Virus record (IMG/VR): IMGVR_UViG_3300046703_000335
Span: 1-64,000 of that record
Direction: 5' to 3' (one strand)
DNA: 64,000 bases
Below the pieces are notes generated by a model that did not search any database, was not told the origin of the DNA, and was given only the letters and a program-made list of their open reading frames with translations. The position numbers and the translations under genes were made by a program. Every line of letters starts with the position of its first letter. The first letter of the stretch is position 1. Shown here piece by piece: positions 10,606-63,889 of this stretch.

Positions 10606-10616
10606 TTTTACCTCTT

Positions 10617-11402: not shown

Positions 11403-11417
11403 AATATTTTTCCTTCA

Positions 11418-11467
11418 TTTTAGGTGTTTAATGATGAATTTATTTTAGGTGTTTAATGACGAATTTA
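11418..11467. repeat. Tandem 25-bp duplication of the RCC1 gene 3' end
   Basis: ttttaggtgtttaatgatgaattta / ttttaggtgtttaatgacgaattta, one mismatch. Confidence 0.9.
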
Positions 11468-12677: not shown

Positions 12678-12688
12678 AATTAATTCCT

Positions 12689-43883: not shown

Positions 43884-44999
43884 TTAATTTTCTTCAAGAA
43901 TTCTTTTTAATCGAGTAGAACACTCTACAGAATCCGGCAGGGTATTAAAGTTGGGACGAACTCTCCGGTGGATATTTTTCCATAGTTTAAGACTATTTCC
44001 CTTATGATAATACATAAGATCTGAGACAAGATCTGGATATCGCTCAGTTACCATAAAAAACAAAGTTTTATGGCTTATGTCCGCAGGAATATCTTTCATA
44101 ACTTCCTCATAAGTTTCCTTAACCCTAATATAGTCATTATGGTGGATATCGTATATCTGCCGATACAAGAGGTCTGTAAGCTCTCTAAACTCTTCGGGTA
44201 CCTCTGCTATGAAACTACGGGGGATATCCGCTTTATCGAAGTCCCAGGCACCCCAGAATGATAGTAGAGTCATATGTGATAGAATTCTATGAATTTTACA
44301 GTATTCTGATCCCTTAACCTTAATCTTAAGACCATTGTGGAAAGTAATAACAAAACCCTCCTCAGTCGCCGGTAGAGTCTTACAATAAGCATATAACTCA
44401 TCCAGGCTATTGAACTCTACAGCCTCTACCACAGTGGCTCCTATGCGCTTTCCTTCCTCTTTAAGGGAGGTGTAGGATATCTCTTCTCCGGTTTCATTAT
44501 TGATGACACCTAAAAGTATCAAATCCTCTGTATCACCATAGTCTATTACAATTTTATTTTCTGGATAGACCATCTCAAAAAGATATGTATGCCCTTTAAG
44601 CATTTCTGTTGACCTTATATGCTTCCGGAACCATATAGTAGCCCACTGCGCCTGATCTGATAAGAAAGATCCCTTGGTCGCTATATAATCTTGACCTTCA
44701 TATCTAAAGTAAATCGCTAAGCTACCGTCAATCTTCTTAAGGGAAATAAAAGGCTTCTTCGCCAAGTCACAAAGATCAATCTTACCCATAAGCTCGGAGG
44801 CATTAAAGAATTTCTTAAAGGAACGTGAAACCACCTCTCCAGTGATCCTATTAAATATGATACCCCGTGCAGCCATAGTGATATCATCCCAATGCCCGTC
44901 ATATTGACATTCCCGTGAATAGCAAAAAAGAACAAGATCATTCCACTCAGTATGTCTGACATAAGGATGGTCATAAAATTTCTTAATATCAAAAGTCAT
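43884..44999 (-). CDS. T4 Rnl1-family RNA ligase
   Basis: ARGIIF, SFKKFFN, KIDGSL motif I, LFE, EEGFV, KIKVKG.EY. Confidence 0.9.
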   Translation of the reverse strand: MTFDIKKFYDHPYVRHTEWNDLVLFCYSRECQYDGHWDDITMAARGIIFNRITGEVVSRSFKKFFNASELMGKIDLCDLAKKPFISLKKIDGSLAIYFRYEGQDYIATKGSFLSDQAQWATIWFRKHIRSTEMLKGHTYLFEMVYPENKIVIDYGDTEDLILLGVINNETGEEISYTSLKEEGKRIGATVVEAVEFNSLDELYAYCKTLPATEEGFVITFHNGLKIKVKGSEYCKIHRILSHMTLLSFWGAWDFDKADIPRSFIAEVPEEFRELTDLLYRQIYDIHHNDYIRVKETYEEVMKDIPADISHKTLFFMVTERYPDLVSDLMYYHKGNSLKLWKNIHRRVRPNFNTLPDSVECSTRLKRILEEN

Positions 45000-47537: not shown

Positions 47538-48197
47538 TTACGATATAAGAAAATCCCAACCTTTAACAAGCCATTCTACATAAAGATCATCTTGTTTACC
47601 ATACCAACCACAAGCATAGGGGGAATTAGCTTCTACCAAAGCCATTTCTCCAGAATCCAACAATCCGAAATCCACTGCTCCACAATAACCTTTAGGAATA
47701 TCTATATCTAATTCGGGAGCATCTGGAGTATTTAGCTCATCACCAGAATACCATTCTCCTGTTAGAATCTTTCCATCAGCGATATAGTATCTCCACTCAT
47801 TTATAAAGGTAACGATATCTGAACACCAATAGGGGCCTCGTTTTTTCTTTCTATAGCCCCCTACTGTAATAAAACCATTAAATCTTTTATGACGATCTGC
47901 TGGCTTAATAAATACGCCCCTATTTTGGGGCCATAAAGTCGATTTCCATACTTTTCTATAAAGGTGGTCTTTTAAAAAATCAGGATAATAATCTGGTATA
48001 GTCTTTTCACTGGGTAAGAACTTTTCGCACCAATCCACCCGACCAGAAGGAATATATCCTTCTGGTCTATCTCCCAGTCTATTACAAAGTTTATAGGGGA
48101 TCCTTTTTAAGATACAGTAGCTTATGATGGCTTTCTCTTCATTAGCACAGGAACCATAAACTAAATGTGATTGTAATGCAAATCCTTTAATATCCAT
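47538..48197 (-). CDS. ATP-grasp (R2K/DUF4343-like) protein
   Basis: VFIKPA..KRF.G, EWRYYI..G.I, AVDFG......ALVEAN..Y. Confidence 0.75.
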   Translation of the reverse strand: MDIKGFALQSHLVYGSCANEEKAIISYCILKRIPYKLCNRLGDRPEGYIPSGRVDWCEKFLPSEKTIPDYYPDFLKDHLYRKVWKSTLWPQNRGVFIKPADRHKRFNGFITVGGYRKKKRGPYWCSDIVTFINEWRYYIADGKILTGEWYSGDELNTPDAPELDIDIPKGYCGAVDFGLLDSGEMALVEANSPYACGWYGKQDDLYVEWLVKGWDFLIS

Positions 48198-49539: not shown

Positions 49540-50172
49540 TTACGAGAGATTAAGAGTCTTCTTAATACCTATCTGATAGTTATCTATGATCCAATCAAAC
49601 TGACCTCGATAGATATTTAAGAATGCATCGATAGCAATGCGCGGGTGAGTGAATCGTAACTTTGGGTTATCTTTATTAAATTCTGCATGACTTATGTAGT
49701 GCCATGGATCTGTGGTCTCCATTTCATAATCATCAATAAGCATTATCCCACCAACTTTTAAAAGTTTCCAGGATAATATCAAATCCTCAAGGAGATTACA
49801 GGCATTATGATCCCCATCCACATAAATAAAATCAAATCTAAAGATATTATCCTTTATAAGATCGATAAGAACTTTTCCGGAAGGTTCCCTATAAAATATA
49901 ATGTCTCCTAAATGCTGTCTTAGGTTATATTCTCCATTTTTAGCGATATAAGGATCAATACAATGTAACATCCCCTTACTTCTGTGGATACTTTCAATAC
50001 TTAAGATATTATCAATCAACCAACAGGAAGTTCTTCCCTCAAAAACTCCTATTTCTAAGAAATTCAACTGAGATTCTTCTGTATTACTAAAAAGCTGTTT
50101 GATATACGCAAAATTAGTATGATGATCGGCATTCCAAAAATTTATTTTTTTTGTAAACTTATACTTATTCAT
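49540..50172 (-). CDS. Class I SAM-dependent methyltransferase
   Basis: FLEIGVFEG, FDFIYVDGDH, LKVGGIMLIDDY. Confidence 0.85.
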   Translation of the reverse strand: MNKYKFTKKINFWNADHHTNFAYIKQLFSNTEESQLNFLEIGVFEGRTSCWLIDNILSIESIHRSKGMLHCIDPYIAKNGEYNLRQHLGDIIFYREPSGKVLIDLIKDNIFRFDFIYVDGDHNACNLLEDLILSWKLLKVGGIMLIDDYEMETTDPWHYISHAEFNKDNPKLRFTHPRIAIDAFLNIYRGQFDWIIDNYQIGIKKTLNLS

Positions 50173-50647
50173 TTATTATAAATTCTCTCATTTTTGGTAA
50201 GTATTTAATTACAAAGGTATCTGTATAGTACCATTTATCTTGAAGACACCTAAGCATATAAATACTTACTTTAAATGTATAAAAATTATAAGTGTCAAGT
50301 ATCGAATCCAATAGAAACTGATGAGTCTGAGAAACTTTACAAATATCTAACTCAATTAGTCTATCTCGAGTCCAACTTATTAAGTGCTCAGATTTAAACT
50401 TATTTGCTAATGTCAGAAACATCGTCTTATCTTCAGCTAATAATTCGTATTCATCATCTTTATACATATTAGAATACATATAGAGATACCATCGATATGT
50501 CCCGGGAACCAGATCCGGAGGAATATACCCTGGAACGTTATCATCCAATGAGCAATTCAGGTGATCAACTGATAATGCTAATAATCTATTTAAATATTCT
50601 GGATTAATCATTTCCACAGCCCTTAGGCTTGTATATGCCTTTTTCAC
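50165..50647 (-). CDS. Hypothetical protein
   Basis: ORF. Confidence 0.5.
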   Translation of the reverse strand: MKKAYTSLRAVEMINPEYLNRLLALSVDHLNCSLDDNVPGYIPPDLVPGTYRWYLYMYSNMYKDDEYELLAEDKTMFLTLANKFKSEHLISWTRDRLIELDICKVSQTHQFLLDSILDTYNFYTFKVSIYMLRCLQDKWYYTDTFVIKYLPKMREFIINE

Positions 50648-51479
50648 GAACTATTTTGTCATAATAATATACTGCGGGGACTCCTACTACTTCTACTCCA
50701 GTTTTAGTACGCTTGACAGTAGAATTATGGTTAAATTCATTCCTGGCTATATTACCTATTATTTTCATATCCTCAAAGCATGCAAAGACATTCCCACCTA
50801 AAGTATGCCCCCCAATAAGTATGGTCTTATATCCTCGAGTGCATGTACAAAAATCATTACACTTTTTATATTCAAAGTCTACAAGATACCAATCTTCTCC
50901 ATCATAATCCTTGACTTCATGGAAATCCTTGCCACGATCATACCCTTTAAAATCCTGAATCTTAAAAGGTATACCAAATGCCTTCCATTTACGTTTATTT
51001 TCTTTTATTACTTCCTTATCATTATGCACCAGTAGCTCTTTAACATATACGGGGACGCCATTATCATGAAGGAAGTGTACGTTGTCTTCGTACATTTTTA
51101 CTAAACTTGGAATATGACCCATCATTTTTCGATGAAAAGTAAATCCTACACGGTGTATCCTATCTTTATAGGGTAATAACCGTGCATAATTTTCACGACT
51201 CTGAAGGCCATTTGTGAGAAAATCAAAGCGTTCTATTGAAGTCGATCGAATAACTGTGCAGATAGTATTAATATTTGTGGAGATGAAAGGCTCACCACCG
51301 TGAAAATGCATCAAAATATCTTCAGCGGGTAAAAGATGTGTGTCCCTGAATAGTTTATATTGGTCAATTGAGAAAGATTGATGCTTTGTGTAATTAGAAT
51401 AGAAACGTTCATGATGGAAGCAATAACTGCAACGGAGATTACAGTCAAAAAAAATTGGGTATGCAATAAATAGCTTCAA
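50604..51479 (-). CDS. Radical SAM protein
   Basis: CNLRCSYC, FHGGEP, TNG; C-terminal Cys cluster. Confidence 0.85.
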   Translation of the reverse strand: MKLFIAYPIFFDCNLRCSYCFHHERFYSNYTKHQSFSIDQYKLFRDTHLLPAEDILMHFHGGEPFISTNINTICTVIRSTSIERFDFLTNGLQSRENYARLLPYKDRIHRVGFTFHRKMMGHIPSLVKMYEDNVHFLHDNGVPVYVKELLVHNDKEVIKENKRKWKAFGIPFKIQDFKGYDRGKDFHEVKDYDGEDWYLVDFEYKKCNDFCTCTRGYKTILIGGHTLGGNVFACFEDMKIIGNIARNEFNHNSTVKRTKTGVEVVGVPAVYYYDKIVREKGIYKPKGCGND

Positions 51480-51520
51480 AGTATATTATCTTTTATTTAT
51501 ATTATATGTTAATTTACAAA

Positions 51521-51921
51521 TGGAGGAGAGGGGAGTTGAACCCCTGTGTCAAGTATGATCCCTATTAATCTCTACATGCTTAGTTTAATTTGCACTACCC
51601 CTCTGTAAATATCAATTAAACAAAATTTTTAACAGAGTGCATTAAGTAATTTCGGTCCCCTTCTCTATTATGCTTTTCGGGTACCCTACTTCGTGATCTT
51701 TTAAGAGATCGGATCCCACGATTGTCCGATACTCTTTGCTACCTTTAATTAGGCAGCGATTGAGCTTGCAACACCTAAACTGATATTATCAGCAAAGGCG
51801 AGAGCAAACTTAACAGCATAATCTTTTGCAATTATACTTTAACGGATGATTTACGAGGCCAACCGTTATCCTCAACATGCAATTAATACTTCACCTACCT
51901 GATCGAAACCAGTACTCCCCC
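51521..51921 (-). ncRNA. ssrA: tmRNA with tag (A)AKDYAVKFALAFADNISLGVASSIAA*
   Basis: 5' GGGGGAGUACUGGUUUCGAUC; 3' GGGUUCAACUCCC-CUCCUCCA; G3:U70 pair; AUAAUU-GCA resume context; tag ORF 51749..51829. Confidence 0.93.
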
Positions 51922-52390: not shown

Positions 52391-53029
52391 TTAATTAACT
52401 CTACATATTTTAAAGTCCTTCAAGCTTATAAGATAATTTTCTTTTACACCAGTATCAACAAATCTTATTAAAGATTCTGTACCGACAATTACAGCCAAAA
52501 GTGCAGTATTGCGTGCAAGGGGATACTCACAAACATCTATCCCTGTACCTTTTTTAGGTACACGATATCTCTCGTTCCAGGTAACTTCTGCGCAATCCTC
52601 TGATAAGCCTATGTGCATACAATCGATCTTATTAACTAAGCAATGATCCATAACTATTTTACGACTCTCCGGATTATCAAAGCCATCAATTACTATCGAA
52701 TCAGCTTTTAAAAATTTTCGAACATTGGAAGCCTCAAGTTTTTTATCGATAGGATCTATAGTAACTTTCATAACATTGAAGAGATGTGACCGGATAGCTG
52801 CAACTTTCAGTTGACCTACATCCCGACTATTCCAAATTTGAGTATTTCGGTTATGTTCCTCTACTCTATCAAAATCGATTACAGTCATTCTCTGAAAACC
52901 CTGACGTACCAGATTATCTGCGAGGTTCGAACCGATCGCACCTACCCCGCATAACGTGATATGCTGTGCAGCTATCTTCTTTAAAAGATCTTCCCCACGG
53001 TAAGCTCCCTCATGTACAAAAGTTTTCAT
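52391..53029 (-). CDS. ThiF/E1-like ubiquitin-like-protein activating enzyme (ORF extends to 53065; likely start 53029)
   Basis: CGVGAIG, IDFDRVEEHN..TQ, GQLK, IDGFDN, DVCEYPLARN. Confidence 0.9.
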   Translation of the reverse strand: MKTFVHEGAYRGEDLLKKIAAQHITLCGVGAIGSNLADNLVRQGFQRMTVIDFDRVEEHNRNTQIWNSRDVGQLKVAAIRSHLFNVMKVTIDPIDKKLEASNVRKFLKADSIVIDGFDNPESRKIVMDHCLVNKIDCMHIGLSEDCAEVTWNERYRVPKKGTGIDVCEYPLARNTALLAVIVGTESLIRFVDTGVKENYLISLKDFKICRVN

Positions 53030-53598
53030 TATCTCACCTTTTTTATATTTTCTATGACATTGCATGCAATTAAAAAATCACTAAGATAATCCAAGTTATA
53101 CCTTGAAACTGCATATGTGGTCCCATTATTGTCTTGTTTTAATAATACTACCCAATGACTGAATGTCAATTCCATCCCAGGCAGAGCAGAGATATAGGGT
53201 CCCGATATAACATCCTGTTCCCAATTTGAATTTTCTTTCAATATCTTAAGAGTATGATGAATGAGATTCAGCCATTTTCTTTCCTCAAGAAGATCTTCCA
53301 AAAAAACATGAGGGTATCCTTCCCAATCATCAATAGGCTCCAATTCATATACAAAAAAGTCAGTCTCATATCCTGTTCGGGGTATTCTAACAGTATTGCT
53401 TATAGCTCGATTACCAGACAGCATTTCATTGTAAATATTACGAATTTTAGGATGCCATTCCTTGTTTATATACAAAGGCAATTCCAATTTTTGTAAGTTA
53501 CTCAGAAAGTATAAATCTTCCACCATCTGGTAACTATTAATTCTCGTCAGATGTCTTGTTAAATTTTCAAAATCTATACTATGAGAATATGTAAACAT
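53029..53598 (-). CDS. Hypothetical protein
   Basis: TAATG-coupled to the ThiF gene. Confidence 0.55.
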   Translation of the reverse strand: MFTYSHSIDFENLTRHLTRINSYQMVEDLYFLSNLQKLELPLYINKEWHPKIRNIYNEMLSGNRAISNTVRIPRTGYETDFFVYELEPIDDWEGYPHVFLEDLLEERKWLNLIHHTLKILKENSNWEQDVISGPYISALPGMELTFSHWVVLLKQDNNGTTYAVSRYNLDYLSDFLIACNVIENIKKVR

Positions 53599-53604
53599 AT
53601 AAAA

Positions 53605-54225
53605 CTATCCCTGACAGATATTATCTCTTCTTTTTAAATTTTTTGCTGTCCCACTATTTTCTCTGCCCTGACGAACCCAAGCGATATCATGTATTGATGC
53701 AAGCGTCATAGCATTATCTCGTTCTTCATCACTTTTAAATCCATAAACTGTGTTATGGTTACCAACATTATTTCTGGGCTTATCAAACATATGATACACT
53801 GTTACGTTCTGATAGTTTTTCAGGAATTCTTGTGCCAAAGTATCAGTACCCCGTGCATCCCCAACTATAAAAGAATAATTACCTGCTATCACATTCTCTA
53901 TCATAGGCTGATAGTGCTCTTTAAATTCATCAGTAGTTAAGTCTAAATGACCCGATATAAAATAGGTATGTTCTCTACTTTTTTCTTTTTCAAGCCACAA
54001 AAGATCTTCTTTGGAAATCACTTCATCAAATAAAAACTGTGATCGATCTCCATAATCGATAACTCTACCATCCCGGGAACGACAACCTATAAGATTATTA
54101 CTGTCCCATCCAGGGCATTTATCTATAAATGCATATAGACCTTTCAATGTGGGAGGATTAATCTCTGGCATATCCTCCCAAGGAGTCACCACTGCATCAT
54201 TAATAACTTTTCGATGTCGTATCAT
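53605..54225 (-). CDS. Protein with C-terminal SLOG/DprA-like Rossmann domain
   Basis: FISGH, IVGDARGTD.LAQ, RD..M. Confidence 0.6.
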   Translation of the reverse strand: MIRHRKVINDAVVTPWEDMPEINPPTLKGLYAFIDKCPGWDSNNLIGCRSRDGRVIDYGDRSQFLFDEVISKEDLLWLEKEKSREHTYFISGHLDLTTDEFKEHYQPMIENVIAGNYSFIVGDARGTDTLAQEFLKNYQNVTVYHMFDKPRNNVGNHNTVYGFKSDEERDNAMTLASIHDIAWVRQGRENSGTAKNLKRRDNICQG

Positions 54226-54314
54226 TTTTACTCCAATACAAAAAAGCTAATGAATGCAAATTTCTATAGTTCATTCTACTATTTAATATACTATTTTAAA
54301 ATTAGCTATACAAT

Positions 54315-54350
54315 AAAAAAGAAAGGGGAAGACTTTTCCCGGTCTTCCCC
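54315..54350 (-). terminator. Rho-independent terminator downstream of the tRNA-mimic RNAs
   Basis: 9-bp stem GGGGAAGAC/GTCTTCCCC plus U-tract. Confidence 0.85.
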
Positions 54351-54397
54351 CTCAAATTATATCTCACCCGAGAGTTGTAATCTCAGGATTAGATAGT

Positions 54398-54560
54398 GAT
54401 GGTCAATAAATAATACCCTCGCCCTTTATAATAAGTCTCCCACTCTACCGCTGAGCTATAGACCCCCGAAGTTATCTATTACAAAATAACTTAGAGGGTC
54501 TAAATGGATTTGAACCACTGACAGGAGTGTTTTAAGGCTACCTATTCTTTATTAACCACC
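54398..54560 (-). ncRNA. YrlA-like Y RNA 2 (circularly permuted tRNA mimic)
   Basis: Order T arm (AGTGG-TTCAAAT-CCATT), acceptor TAGACCC/GGGTCTA closed by a hairpin, D arm (GCTC-AGCGGTA-GAGT); 13-bp terminal stem GGTGGTTAATAAA/TTTATTGACCATC; no anticodon loop. Confidence 0.75.
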
Positions 54561-54624
54561 TTCAATTTTGAATCTTGGACATTCAAAACACTAATCATCA
54601 ACTTAAATCTGGTATGCAAAAAAA

Positions 54625-54755
54625 TAAAAATAATCTTTTGCCTTTTACAGAAGTACTCTACCAAACTGAGCTACCTTCTCCATATTTTTTAGGGGAGAAG
54701 GAGAGGAATCGAACCTCCGCGTCTTCTGATATAGAAAAAGACAAAAGTGCTTTTA
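54625..54755 (-). ncRNA. YrlA-like Y RNA 1 (circularly permuted tRNA mimic, His-like acceptor)
   Basis: T arm GGAGG-TTCGATT-CCTCT, acceptor CCTTCTC-C/G-GAGAAGG closed by a short linker, D arm GCTC-AGTTTGGTA-GAGT; ends pair (CTTCTG/CAGAAG, then CTTTTGTCTTTT/AAAAGGCAAAAG). Confidence 0.75.
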
Positions 54756-54776
54756 GGATAATTAACCTACTCGGGG

Positions 54777-55550
54777 CTAATTAACTTTAAACCCCTGATT
54801 AATATAATTAAAAAATTTCAGTCCAACTTTTGCTGACTCAGTTTCCTGAGCATTTGCTTTTGACCGGGCGATCTTCACACCAGAGATCAGGCAATCAATA
54901 CGATTGAGCAACTGACTCTTCTGTTTTGGAGATAAACCTCCACTAGCGTAGGTTTGTGTCCAAGTTCCAACTGCTTCATCCGACATAACAATCTCAGTTT
55001 GTGCTTGAAACTTATCAGTAGCTTCAGCCTTGGTAATAACCTTTGGAATTTTCTTTGTTCTGATACGTTCTATTGGTTCAGATTTCCATACCCCTGTTCG
55101 AGTTACATCATCTGACCAAACCTTTGAGGGATCAATTGTAGGAATCTCTTCATAGACCTTCCTAACTCTTTCCAGAGCGGATTCCATCTGTACCAGAAAT
55201 GTTACAGGGGCCTTTTCAAGAATAATCTCTGTAGTGCCATCAGGAAGCTCTACAACGACATCCGCAGAGGCACTCTGATTACCACGTTCTTTCTGAAGTT
55301 CAATATCAATAAAACGAACTATCGATGCTTGAGAATAATCAAGTTTATCCTTAACTGTTGTGACCATAGGAGTAAACTCTTCATCAGGGCGATCCTTATC
55401 CTGGTCATTGAAAGGAGAATAACTCTTACGTGATTCAATGAAGTGTGCCGAGCGCTGATTGAATGTTTTAAGAGTTTCATCAATAATCTTGGCAAAGACA
55501 TCCTTTGCATCTTTTTCTACTGCAAGAAGCTCATACAATTTACCACCCAT
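54777..55550 (-). CDS. Conserved helical hypothetical protein directly upstream of the Y RNAs
   Basis: SD GGAGG; KL.ELLAVEK N-terminus, coiled-coil ends. Confidence 0.7.
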   Translation of the reverse strand: MGGKLYELLAVEKDAKDVFAKIIDETLKTFNQRSAHFIESRKSYSPFNDQDKDRPDEEFTPMVTTVKDKLDYSQASIVRFIDIELQKERGNQSASADVVVELPDGTTEIILEKAPVTFLVQMESALERVRKVYEEIPTIDPSKVWSDDVTRTGVWKSEPIERIRTKKIPKVITKAEATDKFQAQTEIVMSDEAVGTWTQTYASGGLSPKQKSQLLNRIDCLISGVKIARSKANAQETESAKVGLKFFNYINQGFKVN

Positions 55551-55656
55551 TAAAAACCTCCTGAGAATATTATGTATATTTTATCTATCTAATAGGATAT
55601 CTAAAGGATATTATTAAATATAATTAAAACTCTAAGGTAATAACATATAAAAATAA

Positions 55657-55686
55657 AAAAGAGTCCTGCTTTGGCGGGACTCTTTT
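55657..55686. terminator. Bidirectional-type intrinsic terminator
   Basis: AAAAGAGTCCTGC-TTTG-GCGGGACTCTTTT. Confidence 0.8.
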
Positions 55687-55710
55687 GAAAAAGCATATAA
55701 ACATCAAATC

Positions 55711-56904
55711 TTATCTCTGAGCAGTATTATTCTTACCTGCCATTCCCATATTAATACCGAGATCCATAGCTGTCTTAGCATTCAGCATATTAATGAGATC
55801 AGTTGCTCCATTTGCACCTTTACTATTTTCACCCATAATAACAGAAGGAACCCAGTTACCTTTATATTCAGAGATAGCTTTAGCATAATTAGCGTTAACT
55901 TCTTTATAAGCCTCTAATTTTTTATCCAAAGCACCATCAGCTGTCATAACAAGTTTCTTACGTTCAGCCTCTCCCTGCCCCAGAAGAATCTGTTCTGCTT
56001 TCTTAAATTCAGCAGCCTCTTTGTTAAGTTTAGCAACCTCTTTTTCTTGCTCCCCAAGAGTGACTGCGCGCGCCTTGACAACTTCCTGTTCCCAGCGACT
56101 TCTTGCAGCATTAGCCTCCCCCTGCTTTGCAACAGTAATTGCATTCTGTTCTGCTTTTTTAGCATCGGCTATTGAAGTTTGAACATCCATAGTAATCTGC
56201 TGTTGACTCTGAATTTGCTTTTCAATTGCCCCATCATAAGGGAGGGCATTAATCGCGAAGTTAAATGTTTTTATGCCAAAAATAGCCATAGCAGCATCTT
56301 CTTGACGTTCAGGCACTCCATTTTTCATTATTATATCAACTACAGTTACGGTTTTTTCAGCGCCAGTCATTTGGTCTATAGTCTTTGCTTCCTTAGAAAC
56401 AGTTCGGTACACACCATTTTGAATCTGATCCTCTACATACTGAATAAGATAGTTTCTTTTTTCGGCATATGACTCTTTGGAAGACATAAGTGGTCCAGTC
56501 ATATAAATGGCTTTATTTACTACTGTTGCTACTAACTGATTTTCAAGAGCTTGGATGCTACCAAATTTTGAATGAATATTAGAAAGATTAATGGGATCCA
56601 CAGGTAATTCATAACTTACACTGCCGTCCATTGTTCCATGTCCACCATCATTAAATCTTACTTGAGTTTTAAAGGAGTATATTTCTCTTTTAGGGTACTT
56701 AGATACCTTACCAAAACCTTGCCATTTTACACCGGCAGTTACATGCCAGGTAAGCTTACCAGAAATCGGACTTTGAACTACTAAGATCTGATTAGCATTA
56801 TTGACCTCAACAAATTGAAAAATTGACCACAAGCCTATTATGCATATGATCCCCCCAACGATTAATTTAAAAACTCCAGCAGGACTTTCCTGGGCTCTTG
56901 CCAT
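55711..56904 (-). CDS. SPFH/Band-7 (prohibitin-like) membrane protein
   Basis: N-terminal TM, SPFH core, Ala/Glu-rich coiled-coil. Confidence 0.85.
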   Translation of the reverse strand: MARAQESPAGVFKLIVGGIICIIGLWSIFQFVEVNNANQILVVQSPISGKLTWHVTAGVKWQGFGKVSKYPKREIYSFKTQVRFNDGGHGTMDGSVSYELPVDPINLSNIHSKFGSIQALENQLVATVVNKAIYMTGPLMSSKESYAEKRNYLIQYVEDQIQNGVYRTVSKEAKTIDQMTGAEKTVTVVDIIMKNGVPERQEDAAMAIFGIKTFNFAINALPYDGAIEKQIQSQQQITMDVQTSIADAKKAEQNAITVAKQGEANAARSRWEQEVVKARAVTLGEQEKEVAKLNKEAAEFKKAEQILLGQGEAERKKLVMTADGALDKKLEAYKEVNANYAKAISEYKGNWVPSVIMGENSKGANGATDLINMLNAKTAMDLGINMGMAGKNNTAQR

Positions 56905-56954
56905 AAGACACTCCTTAATATAAATGTTATTTGATTTGGAAGATTCACTCCCTG

Positions 56955-57221
56955 TTATTTATTATCGTTTGTTTCTTCTTTTTTAAGATCTTCTATAGAC
57001 TTTAATTTTTCATCATTTATTTTTCTTTGCTGCACTATATCCTGGATTAAATCTAATTCTACTGAACTCTGCTTTACCTCTTCCAATTTTTTAAGTATAA
57101 CTCTTTCTTTTGTAAATATCGGGAAATATGAAGTACCCCTTAAAAAAGGGTAAATAATTTGAGTAACCAGCACAGAAGCTATAATGCAAAACATACCGAG
57201 TTCTAATACAAAAAAAATCAT
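56955..57221 (-). CDS. Small membrane protein
   Basis: N-terminal TM. Confidence 0.55.
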   Translation of the reverse strand: MIFFVLELGMFCIIASVLVTQIIYPFLRGTSYFPIFTKERVILKKLEEVKQSSVELDLIQDIVQQRKINDEKLKSIEDLKKEETNDNK

Positions 57222-57252
57222 AAAACTCCTTTTAATATTGTCTTAATCCAAG

Positions 57253-57507
57253 TTAATTACTGCCGAATTGCTTGACTTCAGTATCACTGTCAAGAACGCA
57301 AGCACAATCTTTAATATTAGGATCACAAATTGCACCTATTGCAATAATATCTATTCTCAATCTCTCCAAATTAATCTTAAGATCATTAACAGGTATAATA
57401 ACTCTATCCATATCAATGTCTTCACAAATAGCGCTATCTAAAGAACTTATAACATGATTATAATCTTTGATAAGTTTTTTTCTTAGGATATTAAAGTCTA
57501 TTTCCAT
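57253..57507 (-). CDS. Hypothetical protein
   Basis: ORF. Confidence 0.5.
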   Translation of the reverse strand: MEIDFNILRKKLIKDYNHVISSLDSAICEDIDMDRVIIPVNDLKINLERLRIDIIAIGAICDPNIKDCACVLDSDTEVKQFGSN

Positions 57508-57519
57508 TGCATTTCCCTT

Positions 57520-57741
57520 TTATAAACTTTGAATAGGCTCTATGGTAGAGCTTTTAGGGCAGACAGTATCTATTTTTTTATTTTTTACTTTTAAACTATT
57601 TTTCTTCTTATCCAGTTGAATAATGTAATCATGAAGTTCATGAAATTCTGAAGCTGAAAATTTTGAATGTGGGTTGCCTACAGCAACTAATCTCTCGGTC
57701 AATTCTCTAAATCTGCTATCCATAAAATACCTTCCATACAA
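57520..57741 (-). CDS. Hypothetical protein
   Basis: ORF; start uncertain. Confidence 0.45.
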   Translation of the reverse strand: MYGRYFMDSRFRELTERLVAVGNPHSKFSASEFHELHDYIIQLDKKKNSLKVKNKKIDTVCPKSSTIEPIQSL

Positions 57742-57751
57742 AAATTAAATG

Positions 57752-58000
57752 TCATTGTAAAAAATCAGAAATCTGTGCTTCACAAGATGATTGAAATTCT
57801 TTAATAACAGCTATTGCATCTTTAACACGCTGAGCATCTTCTGGATTTGAGCATATAAGATCAGGATTAAGATATCCACCATCAGCTAAATCATACCAGA
57901 AATCACTGGATGATGCCCCACATTTTTTATTTACTTTCATAAGAAACCTTATATGAATTAAATTGGTAGCCAACAAATAAAAAATGGACCATAAGACCAA
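57752..58000 (-). CDS. Hypothetical protein
   Basis: SSDFWYDL.DGGY.NP; start uncertain. Confidence 0.55.
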   Translation of the reverse strand: MVLWSIFYLLATNLIHIRFLMKVNKKCGASSSDFWYDLADGGYLNPDLICSNPEDAQRVKDAIAVIKEFQSSCEAQISDFLQ

Positions 58001-58371
58001 AAGTCTACAGAAGATTTTTTTACAATAGTGGATCTATCTTTACGAAGACCTCCTACAGAATAGCAATAATACGCAGAATGATTCCCGCACCCAATCCCAC
58101 AGAGATATGTCTTATATATTGATTTCACCCAAGATCTCATTGTAGAATTATCTGTGGCACTTGGTGTGACATTTGATATACCTGGATGAGTATGATACCA
58201 CCCAATTACCCAAGGACTATTCGCTTTTGAATAATTCATTTCCACTTTAGCAGAAGATCCTATAGCATGATATCTACGAATCCCAATGAAAAATCTTATA
58301 CCTGGAAGAAACTTTTCCAAGCGAATTCCATACAAGAACCAGCATTCTTCTTTAAAGTTTAGTTTCGACAT
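57958..58371 (-). CDS. JAB/MPN (JAMM) metallopeptidase
   Basis: EECWFLYG (catalytic Glu), IGWYHTHP...PSATD JAMM motif. Confidence 0.85.
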   Translation of the reverse strand: MSKLNFKEECWFLYGIRLEKFLPGIRFFIGIRRYHAIGSSAKVEMNYSKANSPWVIGWYHTHPGISNVTPSATDNSTMRSWVKSIYKTYLCGIGCGNHSAYYCYSVGGLRKDRSTIVKKSSVDFWSYGPFFICWLPI

Positions 58372-58579
58372 CCGGAGATTCTTTCTTAGCTATTGCATCA
58401 ATCAAAGCATCTAACCTTACTCGGTCAAATTTTTTATCACAAAACCGACAATTTACACGAGAATAATCTTTATGTCCTATAGCATGTGGATGCTTAGCAA
58501 TTGATAATCCTTTTCTTTTACATGCAGGGCACTCAATTCCCCTATAATTTAATCGCATCATATGACCGACTCTAATCAA
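58352..58579 (-). CDS. Zn-ribbon protein
   Basis: CPAC...CRFC. Confidence 0.55.
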   Translation of the reverse strand: MIRVGHMMRLNYRGIECPACKRKGLSIAKHPHAIGHKDYSRVNCRFCDKKFDRVRLDALIDAIAKKESPDVETKL

Positions 58580-58967
58580 TTATGTCCCCTATTTCCTTTT
58601 TCAGCGCTTCTTTGTCTGAATGAGTATTCTTTTCGTTTATTTTAATGAAATCTTTATTCCTAACCATCTCCCATAACCCACAGTCTTTCAAATCCTCAAT
58701 TATTGAAAATACCGTACGTTTATCCCTGGACCATCTTTGCTCACTACCTTTAAAGTCATAATGGGATATCTTTGAATAGTATTGATAAGTTGGATTTTGT
58801 ATTTCAAGATACTCATCATCTATAAAAAACAACTGATAGCATGTTATACGGGTACTCTCTTCAACTGTGATTTCTATAATAGGATATGCTGCAGTTATAC
58901 GCCTCTTCTTCCTACCATACTTATGCATAAGATTGTCTACAGCATCTAATATAATAGGAGGGAACAT
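58572..58967 (-). CDS. Hypothetical protein
   Basis: ORF. Confidence 0.5.
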   Translation of the reverse strand: MFPPIILDAVDNLMHKYGRKKRRITAAYPIIEITVEESTRITCYQLFFIDDEYLEIQNPTYQYYSKISHYDFKGSEQRWSRDKRTVFSIIEDLKDCGLWEMVRNKDFIKINEKNTHSDKEALKKEIGDIID

Positions 58968-58969
58968 TC

Positions 58970-59344
58970 TTACCTAATCTCCCGAATCTCTATAATATCA
59001 GGATTTTTACATTCCATAAATTGAAGTCTAGCTCTTCCAAGACTATTCAAAGTACCTACAAATTCTTTTAGTAATGCTTTTGACTCTTCTGAATATTTAT
59101 CTGCGGGTATAGAGAATAGTGTAATATAGAGTTTTAATCGATGATCCTTTTTTTCAGTAAGTTTTGAAAAGTAATCTTTTAGCTTCTTATCACTATCTAA
59201 AATGAACTCACGAAAGCCTTCATGTTGAACTTTTATGGTATAATCTACTTTCTCGGAAAAGCTTAAAGTAGCCCACTCAAGTGGAAGAAGATTACTATAT
59301 GCACTCTTATCAGATCTTTTTTTAAGCATCATGCCTCCTATCAA
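58970..59344 (-). CDS. Hypothetical protein
   Basis: ORF. Confidence 0.5.
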   Translation of the reverse strand: MIGGMMLKKRSDKSAYSNLLPLEWATLSFSEKVDYTIKVQHEGFREFILDSDKKLKDYFSKLTEKKDHRLKLYITLFSIPADKYSEESKALLKEFVGTLNSLGRARLQFMECKNPDIIEIREIR

Positions 59345-59861
59345 AATGAGGAAGTCTCACTTCACTTAGCATATACCAACCCTCATCAATATACTTAAAT
59401 ATCCTAAAATACCCTGTTCCTTTTAATCTACTTAGAATCTTTGAAAATTGATATTTAATCTTTATTTGATTCATAGCCTGAACACCAGTAAGATTAAACA
59501 AGGTATTTAATATATGCGCAGAATATGATTGACTAGTAGTCCTATATACAGCTTTTAGCAAAGCTATCTCAAAAGGGTCACAATATTGTTTTAGCTCTTT
59601 AAATATTTTTTCTGAATCACCTTCACACAATCTATCTAAAGTTTCAAGAAAAGTTACCCGGGCACGTAATTTTGCCAATCGATGTGAGATAGCCCCCTGG
59701 GTCAATCCTGTAATGTCTGCTATTTCAACTTGCCCTAAATTAAAGATACAATAGTACTTGTAAATGTCACGTTCTAAAGAAGGTATCTTATCATAGAATC
59801 TTAAGAAATTCTCATAAGATATCTGAGATGCATTAGCATTGCTATGTTGGCTCAGCATCAT
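59322..59861 (-). CDS. Sigma-70 region-4-like HTH protein
   Basis: QVEIADITGLTQGAISHRL.K.R. Confidence 0.65.
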   Translation of the reverse strand: MMLSQHSNANASQISYENFLRFYDKIPSLERDIYKYYCIFNLGQVEIADITGLTQGAISHRLAKLRARVTFLETLDRLCEGDSEKIFKELKQYCDPFEIALLKAVYRTTSQSYSAHILNTLFNLTGVQAMNQIKIKYQFSKILSRLKGTGYFRIFKYIDEGWYMLSEVRLPHFDRRHDA

Positions 59862-60030
59862 TTTCCTGGGGATTTAATCGCTTTAAGATATTATCCATTT
59901 TAGATTTATATACACCCTGCTCAGCCCAGGTGTATCTTGCGCTAATATCAAAAAATTTAGATAGGACTGTAGCGAGTTCTATAATTTCTTTCTTTATAGC
60001 ACATGTATTACATTGTTCTGGCATATGCAA
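59842..60030 (-). CDS. Hypothetical protein
   Basis: ORF with CxxC. Confidence 0.45.
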   Translation of the reverse strand: MHMPEQCNTCAIKKEIIELATVLSKFFDISARYTWAEQGVYKSKMDNILKRLNPQENDAEPT

Positions 60031-60035
60031 CCCTC

Positions 60036-60893
60036 TTATTGAACATTATTAAATCGATGCAACACACCCGTCTGTTGAGCTTCCCTAACCACAGTGATTA
60101 AGCTCTTCAAGTCAAACCTGTGATCATTTCCAGATAAACAAATACCTGCGGCAATGACCATTCGCTTGTTATCTTTCGAAATATGGCTGGTGAACTCCTC
60201 ACCATCCACCTTATATGTCACACTAAAGTGGTCACTTCTTTCTACGAACCGAACAAACTCTCCCCCGGCATGTTCCACATCTTTTTTTAAGACATTTTCT
60301 TTCTTATCCTCCAAAAACCTTTTATCAAAGGTCGTTCGAAGAGAATAAGCCATTTTTTCCTCAAATGAGAGATTTGCAAACTTAATCTCACCAGGGTCCA
60401 CTAACTTTTCCAAACTATCCCGAAGATATTCCGCTTTAGTAGGGTCATTCCCTGTATCTACACTCTCAAACCAGAAATTAGCACCGTCATAACGAACGAT
60501 AACACGGTCAAAATTCATGACCGTATCATCAAATAATAGCACCGGTATCAGCCCACGGAATGGCAACCCATATTTATTAGCCTTATCCGGGATAGCTAGG
60601 AATTCTTTGTCTCTTCTCAGAGTCAGAGTCACTCTTAGCCTACCAAGACGGCGTAAATAGAGCTCACGTTCAGTAAAGTCTGCATCACCGGTTATTTTAG
60701 CAGAAATAGAATTTAAAGGGCGGATTTTATACCACCCAGGATCAACATTAGGAACTTTGAATGTATATACCAGCCCATCGATAGTAGTTACTACAGAGTT
60801 ATTATAGAAAATAGGAGAAATGAACTCCAGATTTGTGATCTGTTGTTCTTTCCTTCCTAAATTACTAATAATATCAAGGACATTAATAGACAT
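60036..60893 (-). CDS. Conserved hypothetical protein adjacent to the TROVE gene
   Basis: GGAG SD; C-terminal AAGICLSG.D..FDL.SL..V.RE. Confidence 0.7.
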   Translation of the reverse strand: MSINVLDIISNLGRKEQQITNLEFISPIFYNNSVVTTIDGLVYTFKVPNVDPGWYKIRPLNSISAKITGDADFTERELYLRRLGRLRVTLTLRRDKEFLAIPDKANKYGLPFRGLIPVLLFDDTVMNFDRVIVRYDGANFWFESVDTGNDPTKAEYLRDSLEKLVDPGEIKFANLSFEEKMAYSLRTTFDKRFLEDKKENVLKKDVEHAGGEFVRFVERSDHFSVTYKVDGEEFTSHISKDNKRMVIAAGICLSGNDHRFDLKSLITVVREAQQTGVLHRFNNVQ

Positions 60894-60908
60894 ACAATCT
60901 CCCGAGTA

Positions 60909-62471
60909 TTACCTAAAAGATCCACGAGAAATCAAAGGCGTTTCCATGATCTCGAAAACCAGGTCAAGCTTAGATTTACGAGATAAAAGAGGGATCAATC
61001 CCGGTAATGCATAATAATCATTACCTTCAGGGGTATAGATATCATATTCAATACCCGCCCTCTTCAAGTTACTAGAAAAGGTATTATCCGCAGGTCCTAT
61101 ATGAATGATCACCACATTTGGACGAACATTAAATGTCTTTGCATACTGTTCGTACACTGTAGTAAACATAGGACTAGCATTTTCACCCTCATCCGTTATC
61201 ACCACAATAGTTTCCACACTCTTTTTCTTTAACAACAAATAATTAAGTGCACAACCCATCGAAGTTGACCCTCCGGCACGTATGGGTCTAAATGCATTCT
61301 CCCAGTCGGTCAAAGAAGTTCCTTTTGCCTCAATCACTGCTGGAGTTGTATCAAATGCTACCACAGTAAGTTCTGCTATTGTAGCACCAGAAATCAATGC
61401 TGCGGTATTCTTACCAACTTCAATTGCTTTATCCATTGATCCGGACCGGTCAACAAATACAGCGGTTGATACTGAAATCTGACCACTCTTTTTGACCTGA
61501 GCATCTGCTACTTTATCCAATTGTGCTAAAACATCTACATCAAGGATACGACCAGTTTTAGCAGCTGTTTTGGACTTAAGTGTCGACACATTCTTTGACT
61601 TTTCAGCCTTTTTCAATTTTTCCTGAATAAGTGCTTTTGTAGCTTCATTAGCCATAGCACCCTTCTCTTCAAGAGAAGCCATGTTATTAATGACTTCCAT
61701 AGAAGACATGCTATTGATAAGAGCCACGAGTATAGTTGGAGTAATTTTATCGATCAACCCAATTGCGATCGTATATGGAATTTTATTTTCCACAATCATC
61801 TTTGCTGCATCAGCCGGTTCTGCTTCTGATATCTTTTTCAAGATAGTCAGCTTAGAGTCTTCTGGTATTTTCCCATCAAAAAGAATAGCTTGAGCTTGTG
61901 CTGAAGGTTTTACTTTAATTTTCTTGTAAAGGCTCTTCAAATCAGCTCGATTCTTCAAAGCGACTGTATCAAATCGATCCTTATCCGCTTCCAACCAACG
62001 CAAATAATTTTTGATTTCAGTTTCAAAAGAGGAAGTGGTATTTCTTTTCATACCTACAGTCTTCTCTTCGATCCGAACTTCATCGATTGACTTCTTATCG
62101 ATCTTGATCTTTTTACCTGTCTTTATCCGAATCTTAACCTTTTTACCTCGGATAAAACCAAGTATTTTATTCTTCATGAAAACCGCATGTTTTCTGAAAA
62201 GAGCAAGACCGACTTCACGATTATCGATAAAGGGATCCGTAATAAGCATGGCTGCAAAGATCTCGTTATGATCCCTGATCTCGCCCTTAGCGAGATACCA
62301 GCAAGCAAGATGCGCATAGAACAACGGATCATTATCCCGAATATCCTCATGGATCTTTTTTAAAACGTCCGTATCACGATGAGGACAAGTCATGAATGAA
62401 TTGAGCACCCTAACACGGATATCCCCTTCAACTACAGGAGCTGCAGGGGGAATAACTCTACGAGTTGTCAT
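60909..62471 (-). CDS. Ro60-like TROVE-vWA domain protein
   Basis: PHRD..., DPLFYAHLA.WY...G.IRDH helical region, IPYTIAIG, ELNNM-like EVINNM, vWA MIDAS VDRSGSM...GST...ITDEGEN. Confidence 0.8.
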   Translation of the reverse strand: MTTRRVIPPAAPVVEGDIRVRVLNSFMTCPHRDTDVLKKIHEDIRDNDPLFYAHLACWYLAKGEIRDHNEIFAAMLITDPFIDNREVGLALFRKHAVFMKNKILGFIRGKKVKIRIKTGKKIKIDKKSIDEVRIEEKTVGMKRNTTSSFETEIKNYLRWLEADKDRFDTVALKNRADLKSLYKKIKVKPSAQAQAILFDGKIPEDSKLTILKKISEAEPADAAKMIVENKIPYTIAIGLIDKITPTILVALINSMSSMEVINNMASLEEKGAMANEATKALIQEKLKKAEKSKNVSTLKSKTAAKTGRILDVDVLAQLDKVADAQVKKSGQISVSTAVFVDRSGSMDKAIEVGKNTAALISGATIAELTVVAFDTTPAVIEAKGTSLTDWENAFRPIRAGGSTSMGCALNYLLLKKKSVETIVVITDEGENASPMFTTVYEQYAKTFNVRPNVVIIHIGPADNTFSSNLKRAGIEYDIYTPEGNDYYALPGLIPLLSRKSKLDLVFEIMETPLISRGSFR

Positions 62472-62529
62472 ATCTTATCTCCAATCTTATATAGTATCTT
62501 ATCTGTTATGGCACTCTATATAAAGTACC

Positions 62530-62790
62530 TTAGCTTTTACCAAACGGAGTATTAGCCCTTACTGTTATGTTCCCGTTTGAGCTAATTTCTATAGCATGGT
62601 CCCTGAATTCATCCATGCCTACATCATATTTCTGGGCTAATGCCATACGAATTTGATCATGATTAACAGATGATGGTGTTATCACTGTTCCGATAGTGAT
62701 ACCCAATGCTTCAAATCGATCTTGTGAAAAAAGATCGCTAAACTTAAGATCATCCTGTCTTCCTCGAAACATTACATGGATATCCTGCAT
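62530..62790 (-). CDS. Ubiquitin-like/beta-grasp small protein ending ...RANTPFG-KS
   Basis: GGAGG SD before ATG 62790; IHV.F.GR..D N-terminus and G.I.VR...FG C-terminus; E1 and JAB in the same region. Confidence 0.6.
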   Translation of the reverse strand: MQDIHVMFRGRQDDLKFSDLFSQDRFEALGITIGTVITPSSVNHDQIRMALAQKYDVGMDEFRDHAIEISSNGNITVRANTPFGKS

Positions 62791-62845
62791 ACACACCTCC
62801 TATAGATGTTGTTAATATAATGTTGTGTCAAAATTTTTTAAACTT

Positions 62846-63374: not shown

Positions 63375-63432
63375 ATCCGTGCTATCCTAAAATATTTAAA
63401 AAATTACGCAGAAGTTAGGGATGCTAATTTTT

Positions 63433-63508
63433 TGGCTTCTAATGATGGACTTGAACCATCGACGCATTTCTTATAAGGAAATTGCCCTACCAACTGGGCT
63501 AATTAGAA
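63433..63508 (-). tRNA. tRNA-Ile(UAU), CCA encoded
   Basis: TTCTAAT/ATTAGAA acceptor, GCCC D stem, ATTTC-CT TAT AA-GAAAT, GATGG-TTCAAGT-CCATC, G73-CCA. Confidence 0.88.
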
Positions 63509-63551
63509 AATGTAAGCAACCAAAGTAATTGCGTAATTTTTATTATTGTTT

Positions 63552-63576
63552 GTTTCAATCCGCGCTTTTCAGCGAC
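63552..63576 (-). CRISPR. Solitary minimised type I-C-like repeat unit 1
   Basis: GTCGCTGAAAAGCGCGGATTGAAAC. Confidence 0.55.
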
Positions 63577-63733: not shown

Positions 63734-63758
63734 GTTTCAATCCACGCTTTTCAGCGAC
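63734..63758 (-). CRISPR. Solitary minimised type I-C-like repeat unit 2
   Basis: GTCGCTGAAAAGCGTGGATTGAAAC. Confidence 0.55.
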
Positions 63759-63798
63759 TGTACAAAAGTAAAAAAGTTGAAACTACAGAAGTCGTGCA

Positions 63799-63873
63799 TG
63801 CTAGTCTGAGGGATTTGAACCCCCTACCTATTGATTAGAAGTCAATTGCTCTACCAAATGAGCTAATGTAAGC
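63799..63873 (-). pseudogene. Pseudo-tRNA-Arg(UCU) with disrupted acceptor stem
   Basis: Intact D, anticodon (ATTGA-CT TCT AA-TCAAT) and T arms; 5' GCTTACAT pairs only 4/8 with AGACTAGC. Confidence 0.7.
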
Positions 63874-63889
63874 CTTCACTGTAATTGTA

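Follow-up and report, generated by a model that had tools for sequence, protein, structure and literature searches.

A conserved cassette associates a candidate ubiquitin-like modification system with a Ro60-like protein and Y-RNA-like genes in phages and bacteria

Positions 1–64,000 of a 210-kb IMG/VR viral record (IMGVR_UViG_3300046703_000335), read 5' to 3' on the strand shown and called the window below, carry genes for a ubiquitin-like small protein (Ubl), a ThiF/E1-like adenylating enzyme (E1) and a JAB/JAMM metallopeptidase (JAB). We find that these genes belong to a conserved cassette, shared by phages and bacteria, that also encodes a TROVE-vWA protein that appears to be Ro60-like, a 285-residue protein (p285) with an invariant cysteine, and structured Y-like RNAs. 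Taken together, these parts suggest that the Ubl is activated and transferred on, or by way of, a Ro60–Y RNA particle, a reading on which we are evenly divided. An earlier note, made from the letters of this DNA alone, had placed the Ubl, E1 and JAB genes correctly: all three are on the minus strand and spread over 10.4 kb. The protein-coding genes of the cassette in the window are as follows.

62530–62790, minus strand: Ubl gene; open reading frame (ORF) 62530–62796, likely start the ATG at 62790 behind a GGAGG; 86 residues, ending TPFGKS
60909–62471, minus strand: TROVE-vWA gene, predicted Ro60-like, 520 residues
60036–60893, minus strand: p285 gene
57958–58371, minus strand: JAB/JAMM metallopeptidase gene, 137 residues
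52391–53065, minus strand: ThiF/E1-like adenylating enzyme gene; 212 residues from the ATG at 53029, 224 from 53065

The E1 probably starts at the ATG at 53029, a codon overlapped by the stop of the preceding upstream ORF. Every gene between 48 and 64 kb is encoded on the minus strand, and about 12 further ORFs are interspersed among those of the cassette.

To sample viral relatives, IMG/VR was scanned with a TROVE-vWA alignment, which yielded 45 loci; in all, 46 viral loci were examined by iterated hidden Markov model (HMM) searches of their ORFs. TROVE-vWA, p285 and ThiF genes occur in that order on a single strand in 36 of the 46, and in 33 of these 36 a JAB gene stands between p285 and ThiF. 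The full gene order is Ubl, TROVE-vWA, p285, JAB, ThiF. In many loci the five genes are contiguous, often forming a tight operon of 3.7 kb, as in the compact cassette of locus L008 (Ubl 9724–9978, TROVE-vWA 9893–11530, p285 11472–12368, JAB 12334–12750, ThiF 12747–13382). The 10.4-kb copy in the window is the same cassette stretched by unrelated insertions. A nucleotide search of this 10.4-kb region against an annotated phage collection gave no match; protein searches of the same collection found one relative, an uncultured 595-kb phage with the same families in the same order.

The cassette is not confined to viruses. Scanning one bacterial genome per species with the TROVE-vWA alignment identified 65 loci, 26 of which have p285 and ThiF genes beside TROVE-vWA, most of them together with a Ubl gene. 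The phyla represented include Cyanobacteriota, Chloroflexota, Planctomycetota, Myxococcota, Melainabacteria, Acidobacteriota and Armatimonadota, and two of the loci lie on long chromosomal sequences, one from the isolate Dictyobacter alpinus (5.6 Mb) and the other a Chloroflexia chromosome (11 Mb). The earlier note had likened the Ubl, TROVE-vWA, the 285-residue protein and this type of ThiF to a gene cluster of some bacteria; such a cluster exists, in several phyla, and the neighborhood analysis that the note proposed finds the same families together across loci. All-against-all clustering of the neighborhood ORFs placed the five cassette families in 93, 51, 48 (plus 7), 37 and 26 loci, a wider distribution than that of any other family; next came generic kinases and sensor kinases and, as an exception to these, a second vWA protein, described below. 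The p285 and E1 genes co-occur almost one to one and are mostly adjacent. In a tree of TROVE-vWA proteins, viral and bacterial rows are mixed, with the best-supported branches forcing at least seven changes between viruses and bacteria; the window protein falls in a well-supported, almost purely viral clade. Five families thus keep the same order in dozens of loci, at 20–70% identity, in phages and in bacterial chromosomes. Because the same families, order and strand recur in viral and bacterial loci, the cassette is more than a chance neighborhood.

The identities of the two enzymes agree with those first proposed for them. The E1 matches the Pfam ThiF model at 97.1 bits (cut-off 28.1) and contains the string VCEYPLARN; residues G40, G42, G45, D64, D66, K87, D127, D130, N131, R135 and C179, among them those for adenylation, are conserved in at least 95% of 53 relatives. 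C179 lies within VCEYPLARN, in the crossover-loop region, and is likened to C184 of ThiF by position alone. The nearest NCBIfam models are small ThiS adenylyltransferases (PRK08644, 99.7 bits against a cut-off of 159; TIGR02354, 82.3 against 152), and UbaA (46.8 bits), Cap2-type and PRTRC models score lower than these; MoeB models reach 51–59 bits against cut-offs of 376–449. As ThiF proper or as MoeB, the enzyme therefore scores far below every equivalog cut-off. A weak PADLOC match to an E1-E2 model is at the level of the domain. In the JAB, the catalytic set E8, H60-x-H62, S71 and D74 is complete, and these five residues are conserved in at least 95% of 36 relatives; the window protein has one additional residue separating HxH from the serine. 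Its scores fall just under the Pfam cut-offs (Prok-JAB 22.4 against 25, JAB 20.3 against 22.5), and weak matches include the desampylase model, which is its best in NCBIfam, Cap3 and the PADLOC JAB models. We also considered and dropped the PRTRC system (ParB-related, ThiF-related cassette): the PRTRC_ThiF score of 29.6 bits falls far short of its 144.75 cut-off, and none of the other PRTRC families matched.

The small protein had been singled out for its C-terminal glycine, and this feature is conserved. In the window its C terminus reads R78-x5-F83-G84-K-S; R78 and G84 are invariant in 28 relatives aligned over their full length, and the residue before the glycine is Phe or Trp. Beyond the glycine, these relatives have a tail of zero to two residues of any kind, and one further locus has up to four. 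A distant viral clade has the Ubl gene relocated between JAB and ThiF, its product still ending RPKTPFG plus one or two residues. Among non-redundant complete cassettes, the 13 in which the Ubl has a tail all possess a JAB, whereas the 19 that lack a JAB are uniformly tailless (Fisher p = 6e-4), although every tail is viral and phylogeny confounds this association. The pattern fits the suggestion that the JAB matures the Ubl by removing post-glycine residues, and of the comparisons made across sequences it would provide that idea with its strongest support. The prediction of a beta-grasp fold fared less clearly. An AlphaFold2 model (predicted local distance difference test score [pLDDT] 84.5) has a beta-beta-alpha-beta-beta order, with a helical insert before the main helix, and ends in a disordered tail whose last residues have pLDDT below 50, an arrangement that is compatible with the fold. 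Foldseek relates this model to ubiquitin, UBL, PB1 and GB1 domains, all at non-significant values (E of at least 0.45, TM-score of at most 0.44), and the Ubl has no match in Pfam, NCBIfam, PHROG, PADLOC or a PDB profile search.

The sixth part of the cassette is RNA and had escaped the earlier note. Y-RNA-like genes are present in the cassette of the window and of most of its relatives; those in the window, of two classes, are listed below.

54612–54770, minus strand: class-1 Y-RNA-like gene with YrlA architecture (closing stem, T arm, acceptor-like hairpin, D arm)
54423–54538, minus strand: second class-1 Y-RNA-like gene (T arm, long hairpin, D arm)
54321–54353, minus strand: terminator-like hairpin after the class-1 pair, read from the sequence, GGGGAAGAC / GTCTTCCCC followed by a T run
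63765–63886, minus strand: candidate class-2 Y-RNA-like gene; tRNA-like core (D arm, anticodon-like arm, T arm) in a conserved frame
63400–63532, minus strand: second class-2 frame, with a tRNA-Ile(UAU) core at 63433–63508 called by ARAGORN and Rfam

Both class-1 elements sit in an ORF-free gap (54226–54776). The Rfam YrlA model (RF02553) matches the first over its full length at 54629–54741 on the minus strand, below threshold (29.5 bits against 69, E = 0.0055 on 13 kb). Our own covariance model, R1, built from 22 of 49 permuted modules found on the cassette strand of the fetched loci, scores the first element at 60 bits (E = 5e-11) and the second at 53.1 bits (E = 2e-9). R1 has 112 matches in viral sources and 114 in bacterial loci (E of at most 1e-4), 113 of the latter on the cassette strand, and the matches are mostly arranged in tandem between the Ubl gene and TROVE-vWA. 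An alignment of 66 matches, fitted to the model, has 95.1% of its cells paired over 22 base pairs, compared with 41–48% in slid controls, and 21 of the 22 pairs show changes on both sides. Bacterial arrays can be long, with 4–10 Y-like copies upstream of TROVE-vWA (L077 2749–5292, with at least seven copies; L104 5155–7880, with ten matches; L054 3533–7440; L075 7186–7882), which exceeds the one or two Y RNA genes known beside Rsr in Salmonella. One viral locus, L011, has four Y-like matches (8591–9513, minus strand of the locus) opposite the cassette strand, the sole viral locus of this kind.

The class-2 elements have the normal tRNA order of arms inside the frame GCTTACA ... TAGCWT ... ACTT, and both lie just upstream of the Ubl gene. 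For 63765–63886, Rfam tRNA matches at 51.3 bits over model positions 7–64 only and ARAGORN makes no call; it shares its frame (GCTTACA ... TAGCAT ... ACTT) with 12 elements from bacterial and viral cassettes. Element 63400–63532 shows the same 5' GCTTACA, with TAGCAT..ACTTCTG at its 3' side (alignment A9). After each class-2 element stands one copy of a 25-nt unit, GTCGCTGAAAAGCG(C/T)GGATTGAAAC, at 63552–63576 and 63734–63758 (minus strand), about 180 nt apart; two copies occur in the window where none is expected by chance. The unit forms a small hairpin with a ATTGAAAC 3' end and resembles a clustered regularly interspaced short palindromic repeat (CRISPR), and the copies could be solitary repeat units or RNA processing sites.

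These neighbors bear on the identity of the 520-residue protein. No Pfam TROVE match was found for it, and VWA_2 alone matches, below threshold, at 22.2 bits. A profile of 24 relatives has three matches in the PDB, all of them TROVE/Ro60 proteins (9l5y and 9kop, E = 0.025; Rsr 2nvo, E = 0.81), and the profile alignment spans the helical repeats and continues into the vWA domain. The metal-ion-dependent adhesion site of that domain is complete in the window protein (D341, S343, S345, T403, D427) and invariant in the family alignment. Given E values of this order, the adjoining Y-RNA-like genes are the decisive context for regarding the protein as Ro60-like, and we predict that this TROVE-vWA protein is Ro60-like. 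Eight bacterial and three viral loci, 11 in all, encode a further vWA protein that stands alone (Pfam VWA_4 and VWA; for example, 10218–11078 in L081, the Dictyobacter alpinus locus); its gene is placed between those for TROVE-vWA and p285.

The remaining protein, p285, has no Pfam model and no match in PHROGs, NCBIfam or PADLOC. A profile search of 1.84 billion representatives recovered 1,447 clusters at 50% identity (E of at most 0.001), uniform in length at about 270–310 residues, and no fusion partners were seen among the best 150 representatives. Its structure model is confident (pLDDT 90.8). The N-terminal half is modeled as two S1/OB-like beta-barrels, whose Foldseek neighbors in the PDB and BFVD are weak but consistent (S1, CSD, eIF1A, eIF5A, HIN and exosome-cap domains). 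In the C-terminal part, the model has a long helix (177–208), four strands, a loop containing Cys252 and a helix (262–275). The loop carries the motif A-G-I-C-L-x-G-x-D-x-x-F-D-L, in which G250, C252, L253 and D257 are invariant; Cys252 and Asp257, both in the loop, are the only invariant polar residues of the protein. The core of this motif, G-h-C-h, is present in 147 of 150 representatives; two others keep the cysteine in place and the third is truncated.

The order of these elements and the G-I-C-L motif recall the active site of ubiquitin-conjugating (UBC) enzymes; the HPN loop is absent. Profile searches of the PDB with whole p285 and with its C-terminal domain gave no meaningful match, and a profile search for stand-alone copies of the cysteine domain returned fragments of the same family only, with no annotated relatives. 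HMM searches of the cassette (Pfam, NCBIfam, PADLOC) likewise upheld the initial impression that no E2 or sulfur-relay protein is recognizable. The invariant Cys252, which had gone unremarked, makes p285 a candidate for the "missing" E2-like step. From residue conservation and the model, p285 may be an E2-like carrier, an assignment we hold tentatively and at well below even weight.

The sequences themselves establish the gene identities, the catalytic residues, the conserved linkage, the association of tails with the JAB and the structure of the Y-like RNAs. From these parts we infer a route of Ubl adenylation, thioester relay and isopeptide formation, together with its target and biological role. 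A six-part cassette of Y-RNA-like genes, Ubl, TROVE-vWA, p285, JAB and a small ThiF-type E1 might operate as follows. Where residues extend beyond the invariant glycine (KS in this phage), the JAB would strip them, and Gly84 of the Ubl could then be adenylated by the E1 with ATP. The activated Ubl might be passed on directly, as in archaeal sampylation, or by way of Cys179 of the E1 and Cys252 of p285, the latter serving as an E2-like carrier. It would end on a lysine of Ro60, of p285 or of a protein recruited to the Ro60–Y RNA particle, while p285, by means of its pair of S1/OB-like barrels, would attach to RNA or to the tRNA-like module of the Y RNA. The JAB might also reverse the mark. The most specific form of this scheme, in which a dedicated Ubl conjugation pathway resides in the Ro60–Y RNA ribonucleoprotein and p285 is a new E2-like carrier positioned on RNA by its barrels, is possible though somewhat doubtful.

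Several observations weigh against Ubl activation and transfer at a Ro60–Y RNA particle. We infer all of its chemistry (adenylate, thioester and conjugate). The Ubl ends in FG rather than GG and its Foldseek matches (ubiquitin, UBL, PB1) are non-significant (E of at least 0.45), the models closest to the E1 are of sulfur-carrier ThiF types, and the TROVE assignment leans on weak E values (0.025) and context. No E2 or E3 was found by Pfam, NCBIfam, PADLOC or PDB profiles; p285 lacks an HPN-type loop, and the top 50 Foldseek hits of the whole protein in the PDB and BFVD, dominated by its N-terminal OB/S1-like half, include no E2. The link between tails and JAB is confounded by phylogeny in the way described above. 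Finally, 19 cassettes, 18 of them bacterial, have no JAB, so neither trimming nor deconjugation can be a step common to all.

The main rival is a role in sulfur transfer, in which the Ubl would be a ThiS/MoaD-like carrier adenylated by the E1 and converted to a thiocarboxylate by a host sulfurtransferase, its sulfur passing to an RNA base or a small molecule. The JAB would then only trim the tail, as QbsD does for QbsE, or release an adduct, as Mec+ does for CysO, and Cys252 would carry a persulfide. This would accommodate the ThiS adenylyltransferase models that best match the E1 in NCBIfam (PRK08644 99.7 and TIGR02354 82.3 bits), the small size of that enzyme and its lack of E2-binding extensions, and the failure of Pfam, PDB profiles and the cysteine-domain search to detect an E2 or E3; the trimming of two post-glycine residues by a JAMM enzyme has a precedent in QbsE/QbsD, and partners centered on RNA could point to RNA thiolation. 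We nevertheless judge it unlikely, as every ThiF/MoeB equivalog score lies far below its cut-off, the Ubl ends FG and not GG, and the conserved partners are an RNP (ribonucleoprotein) protein and an OB-fold protein, with no rhodanese, cysteine desulfurase, PP-loop ATPase or thiazole/molybdopterin synthase among the conserved neighbors. Conjugation might alternatively proceed with no E2, through a Ubl–E1–JAB triad like SAMP–UbaA–HvJAMM1 or TtuB–TtuC, with p285 as substrate or RNA-binding adaptor and its cysteine otherwise used. The paired S1/OB-like barrels are indeed the clearest structural feature of p285, neither fold nor HMM comparisons support an E2 in it, and the desampylase is the best NCBIfam match of the JAB, with UbaA matching the E1 at 46.8 bits. 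We consider this, too, improbable: p285 and the E1 co-occur almost one to one, usually side by side, and the sole invariant polar residues of p285, Cys252 and Asp257, lie in the loop between meander and helix that would correspond to the position of the UBC active cysteine.

A still less conventional outcome would be transfer of the adenylated Ubl to an RNA end, to the amino or hydroxyl group of a modified nucleoside in a Y- or tRNA-like RNA, or to some other acceptor that is not a protein. The cassette is accompanied by arrays of tRNA-like Y RNAs, p285 has folds of an RNA-binding type, and adenylate chemistry is common to aminoacylation; to our knowledge, though, transfer of a Ubl to such an acceptor is without precedent, and the acceptor-like stem of the class-1 RNAs is closed by a loop and so offers no CCA-like end. 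We regard such an acceptor as highly improbable. The spacing of the window genes, which are separated by a dozen unrelated ORFs and take up 10.4 kb, could by itself suggest a chance co-location of unrelated phage genes in which the small ORF is no modifier. We give that explanation almost no credence, and synteny refutes it: five families hold the same order across dozens of loci in phages and chromosomes, often contiguously.

Compared with known systems, the cassette most resembles archaeal sampylation (SAMP1-3, UbaA, HvJAMM1) and Thermus TtuB/TtuC in having a small glycine-ended Ubl, a single small E1 of the ThiF/MoeB type, a JAMM enzyme and no recognizable E2 or E3; the weak matches of the JAB (its best, to the desampylase) and of the E1 (to UbaA) are in keeping with this likeness. 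Unlike the cassette Ubl, however, the SAMP and TtuB proteins end in GG, double as sulfur carriers and have no Ro60/Y RNA partners in their operons. Those systems also have no cysteine protein like p285, and the cassette enzymes score far below the equivalog cut-offs. In the QbsE/QbsD/QbsC and CysO/Mec+ pathways, a JAMM enzyme removes the extra residues that follow the glycine of the Ubl before adenylation by the E1, and a Ubl with post-glycine residues beside a JAMM enzyme is a feature the cassette shares with these pathways. The Qbs and CysO E1s, in contrast, carry or pair with a rhodanese and their operons encode sulfur-using enzymes, neither of which occurs among the cassette neighbors.

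Cyclic-oligonucleotide-based antiphage signaling system (CBASS) type II (Cap2/Cap3), Bil and Bub likewise combine an E1 adenylation domain with a JAB-type or other deconjugase, and PADLOC matches cassette proteins to them at the domain level. These systems differ in having a recognizable E2, fused or separate, and in their modifier, either the tail of a CD-NTase or a Ubl resembling ubiquitin or ISG15, and none has a Ro60, Y RNA or p285-like protein. A PADLOC scan gave domain-level matches for the E1 and JAB only, with no other CBASS type II, Bil or Bub component. Bub, in addition, works through oxyester intermediates and has a serine protease (bioRxiv 10.1101/2024.11.21.623953).

On the RNA side, bacterial Ro60 (Rsr) with Y RNAs of the YrlA and YrlB types is established, phage copies included (Chen et al. 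2014, PMC4201824); ubiquitin is unmentioned in that paper. The cassette resembles Rsr loci in placing a TROVE-vWA protein beside tRNA-mimicking Y RNAs of the same permuted architecture. Here, however, the protein is too diverged for Pfam TROVE, the RNAs fall under the Rfam cut-off and are often arranged in multi-copy arrays, and the partners differ from those known for Rsr, namely PNPase and the RtcB/RtcA repair operon. Genomes of the Nidhogg viruses, which infect Asgard archaea, are reported to combine genes for a TROVE-vWA Ro60, an RNA ligase and ThiF/E1-like proteins (bioRxiv 10.1101/2021.07.29.454249). As judged from their description, on which this comparison rests, those genes are discussed separately, the E1s as hijackers of host ubiquitin, with no cassette, Ubl, JAB or p285. 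Searches of 8.4 million papers and preprints turned up no description of Ubl–E1–JAB combined with Ro60/Y RNA and p285, though a prior comparative-genomic mention is possible. The component kinds (Ubl/E1/JAMM triads, Ro60/Y RNA) are thus already known, whereas their combination with p285 appears to be undescribed in that literature.

The cellular role of Ro60 and Y RNAs is only partly understood, and in bacteria nucleases and enzymes of RNA repair are the partners known so far; a conserved operon of this kind would tie prokaryotic RNA surveillance to protein modification. It would join CBASS type II, Bil and Bub as a fourth type of ubiquitination-like machinery in bacteria and phages, with the p285 family at its center, in the form of a compact system of five genes plus RNA that could be rebuilt in the laboratory. 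Should p285 prove to be an RNA-positioned E2-like carrier, the timing and place of Ubl attachment would depend on the state of RNA (damage, misfolding or Y RNA occupancy), and the cassette would represent a prokaryotic and phage counterpart of the animal Ro60–Ro52/TRIM21 pairing that complex bacteria and jumbo phages have passed to one another repeatedly. The complete set is present in jumbo phages, where it presumably protects or reshapes the RNA pool during infection.

The surroundings of the cassette in the window also point to the upkeep of RNA and translation. In addition to tRNAs, they include the following.

51518–51921, minus strand: transfer-messenger RNA (tmRNA); Rfam 133 bits, ARAGORN tag peptide AKDYAVKFALAFADNISLGVASSIAA; about 470 nt downstream of the E1 gene
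43884–44999, minus strand: T4 Rnl1-type RNA ligase; Pfam RNA_lig_T4_1 77 bits, PHROG "RNA ligase and tail fiber attachment catalyst"

Because of this tmRNA, the tRNAs and the ligase, we think that the phage cassette probably serves RNA surveillance or repair during infection; we speculate that counter-defense against RNA-targeting host systems is another possible function. The ligase lies 7 kb from the cassette and fits the theme of RNA repair. Downstream of the tmRNA, genes for an R2K-clade ATP-grasp protein (47538–48197), a class I methyltransferase (49540–50172) and a radical SAM protein (50604–51479) stand in a row on the minus strand.

The genes that interrupt the cassette in the window are of another kind. 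Two stretches separate p285 from JAB and JAB from the E1, with these contents.

58352–59861, minus strand: insertions between p285 and JAB; a sigma-70 region-4-like helix-turn-helix protein (59322–59861), two unknown ORFs and a zinc-ribbon ORF
53029–57741, minus strand: insertions outside the conserved cassette; p189, p206, DUF7873, SPFH/Band-7 and four small ORFs
55711–56904, minus strand: SPFH/Band-7 protein (Pfam)
54777–55550, minus strand: DUF7873 protein (strong Pfam match, 230 bits)

The ORFs inserted between p285 and JAB have weak matches in Pfam, PHROG and NCBIfam. Apart from one SPFH gene in locus L006, placed there between Ubl and TROVE-vWA, the inserted genes of both stretches have no relatives in the other loci. 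SPFH and DUF7873 were considered as core parts of the cassette and rejected on these grounds. In the window, SPFH/Band-7 and then DUF7873 stand directly upstream of the two class-1 Y-like RNAs; Burroughs and Aravind reportedly proposed in 2016 that SPFH modules with a tRNA-like RNA act as RNA-repair cofactors. Between these RNAs and the E1 lies the gene for p206, a 206-residue ORF (53605–54225, minus strand) with no family match; it contains a GDARGTD stretch, which we take to recall the nucleotide-binding motifs of SLOG/LOG-type proteins.

Elsewhere in the window are genes for two very large collagen-repeat proteins resembling tail fibers (7351–10605 and 12689–16477, minus strand; 1,084 and 1,262 residues), with an RCC1-repeat protein (11445–12677, minus strand) encoded between them. 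The presence of these collagen-like tail-fiber genes in the record agrees with the description of the system, from the outset, as phage-encoded.

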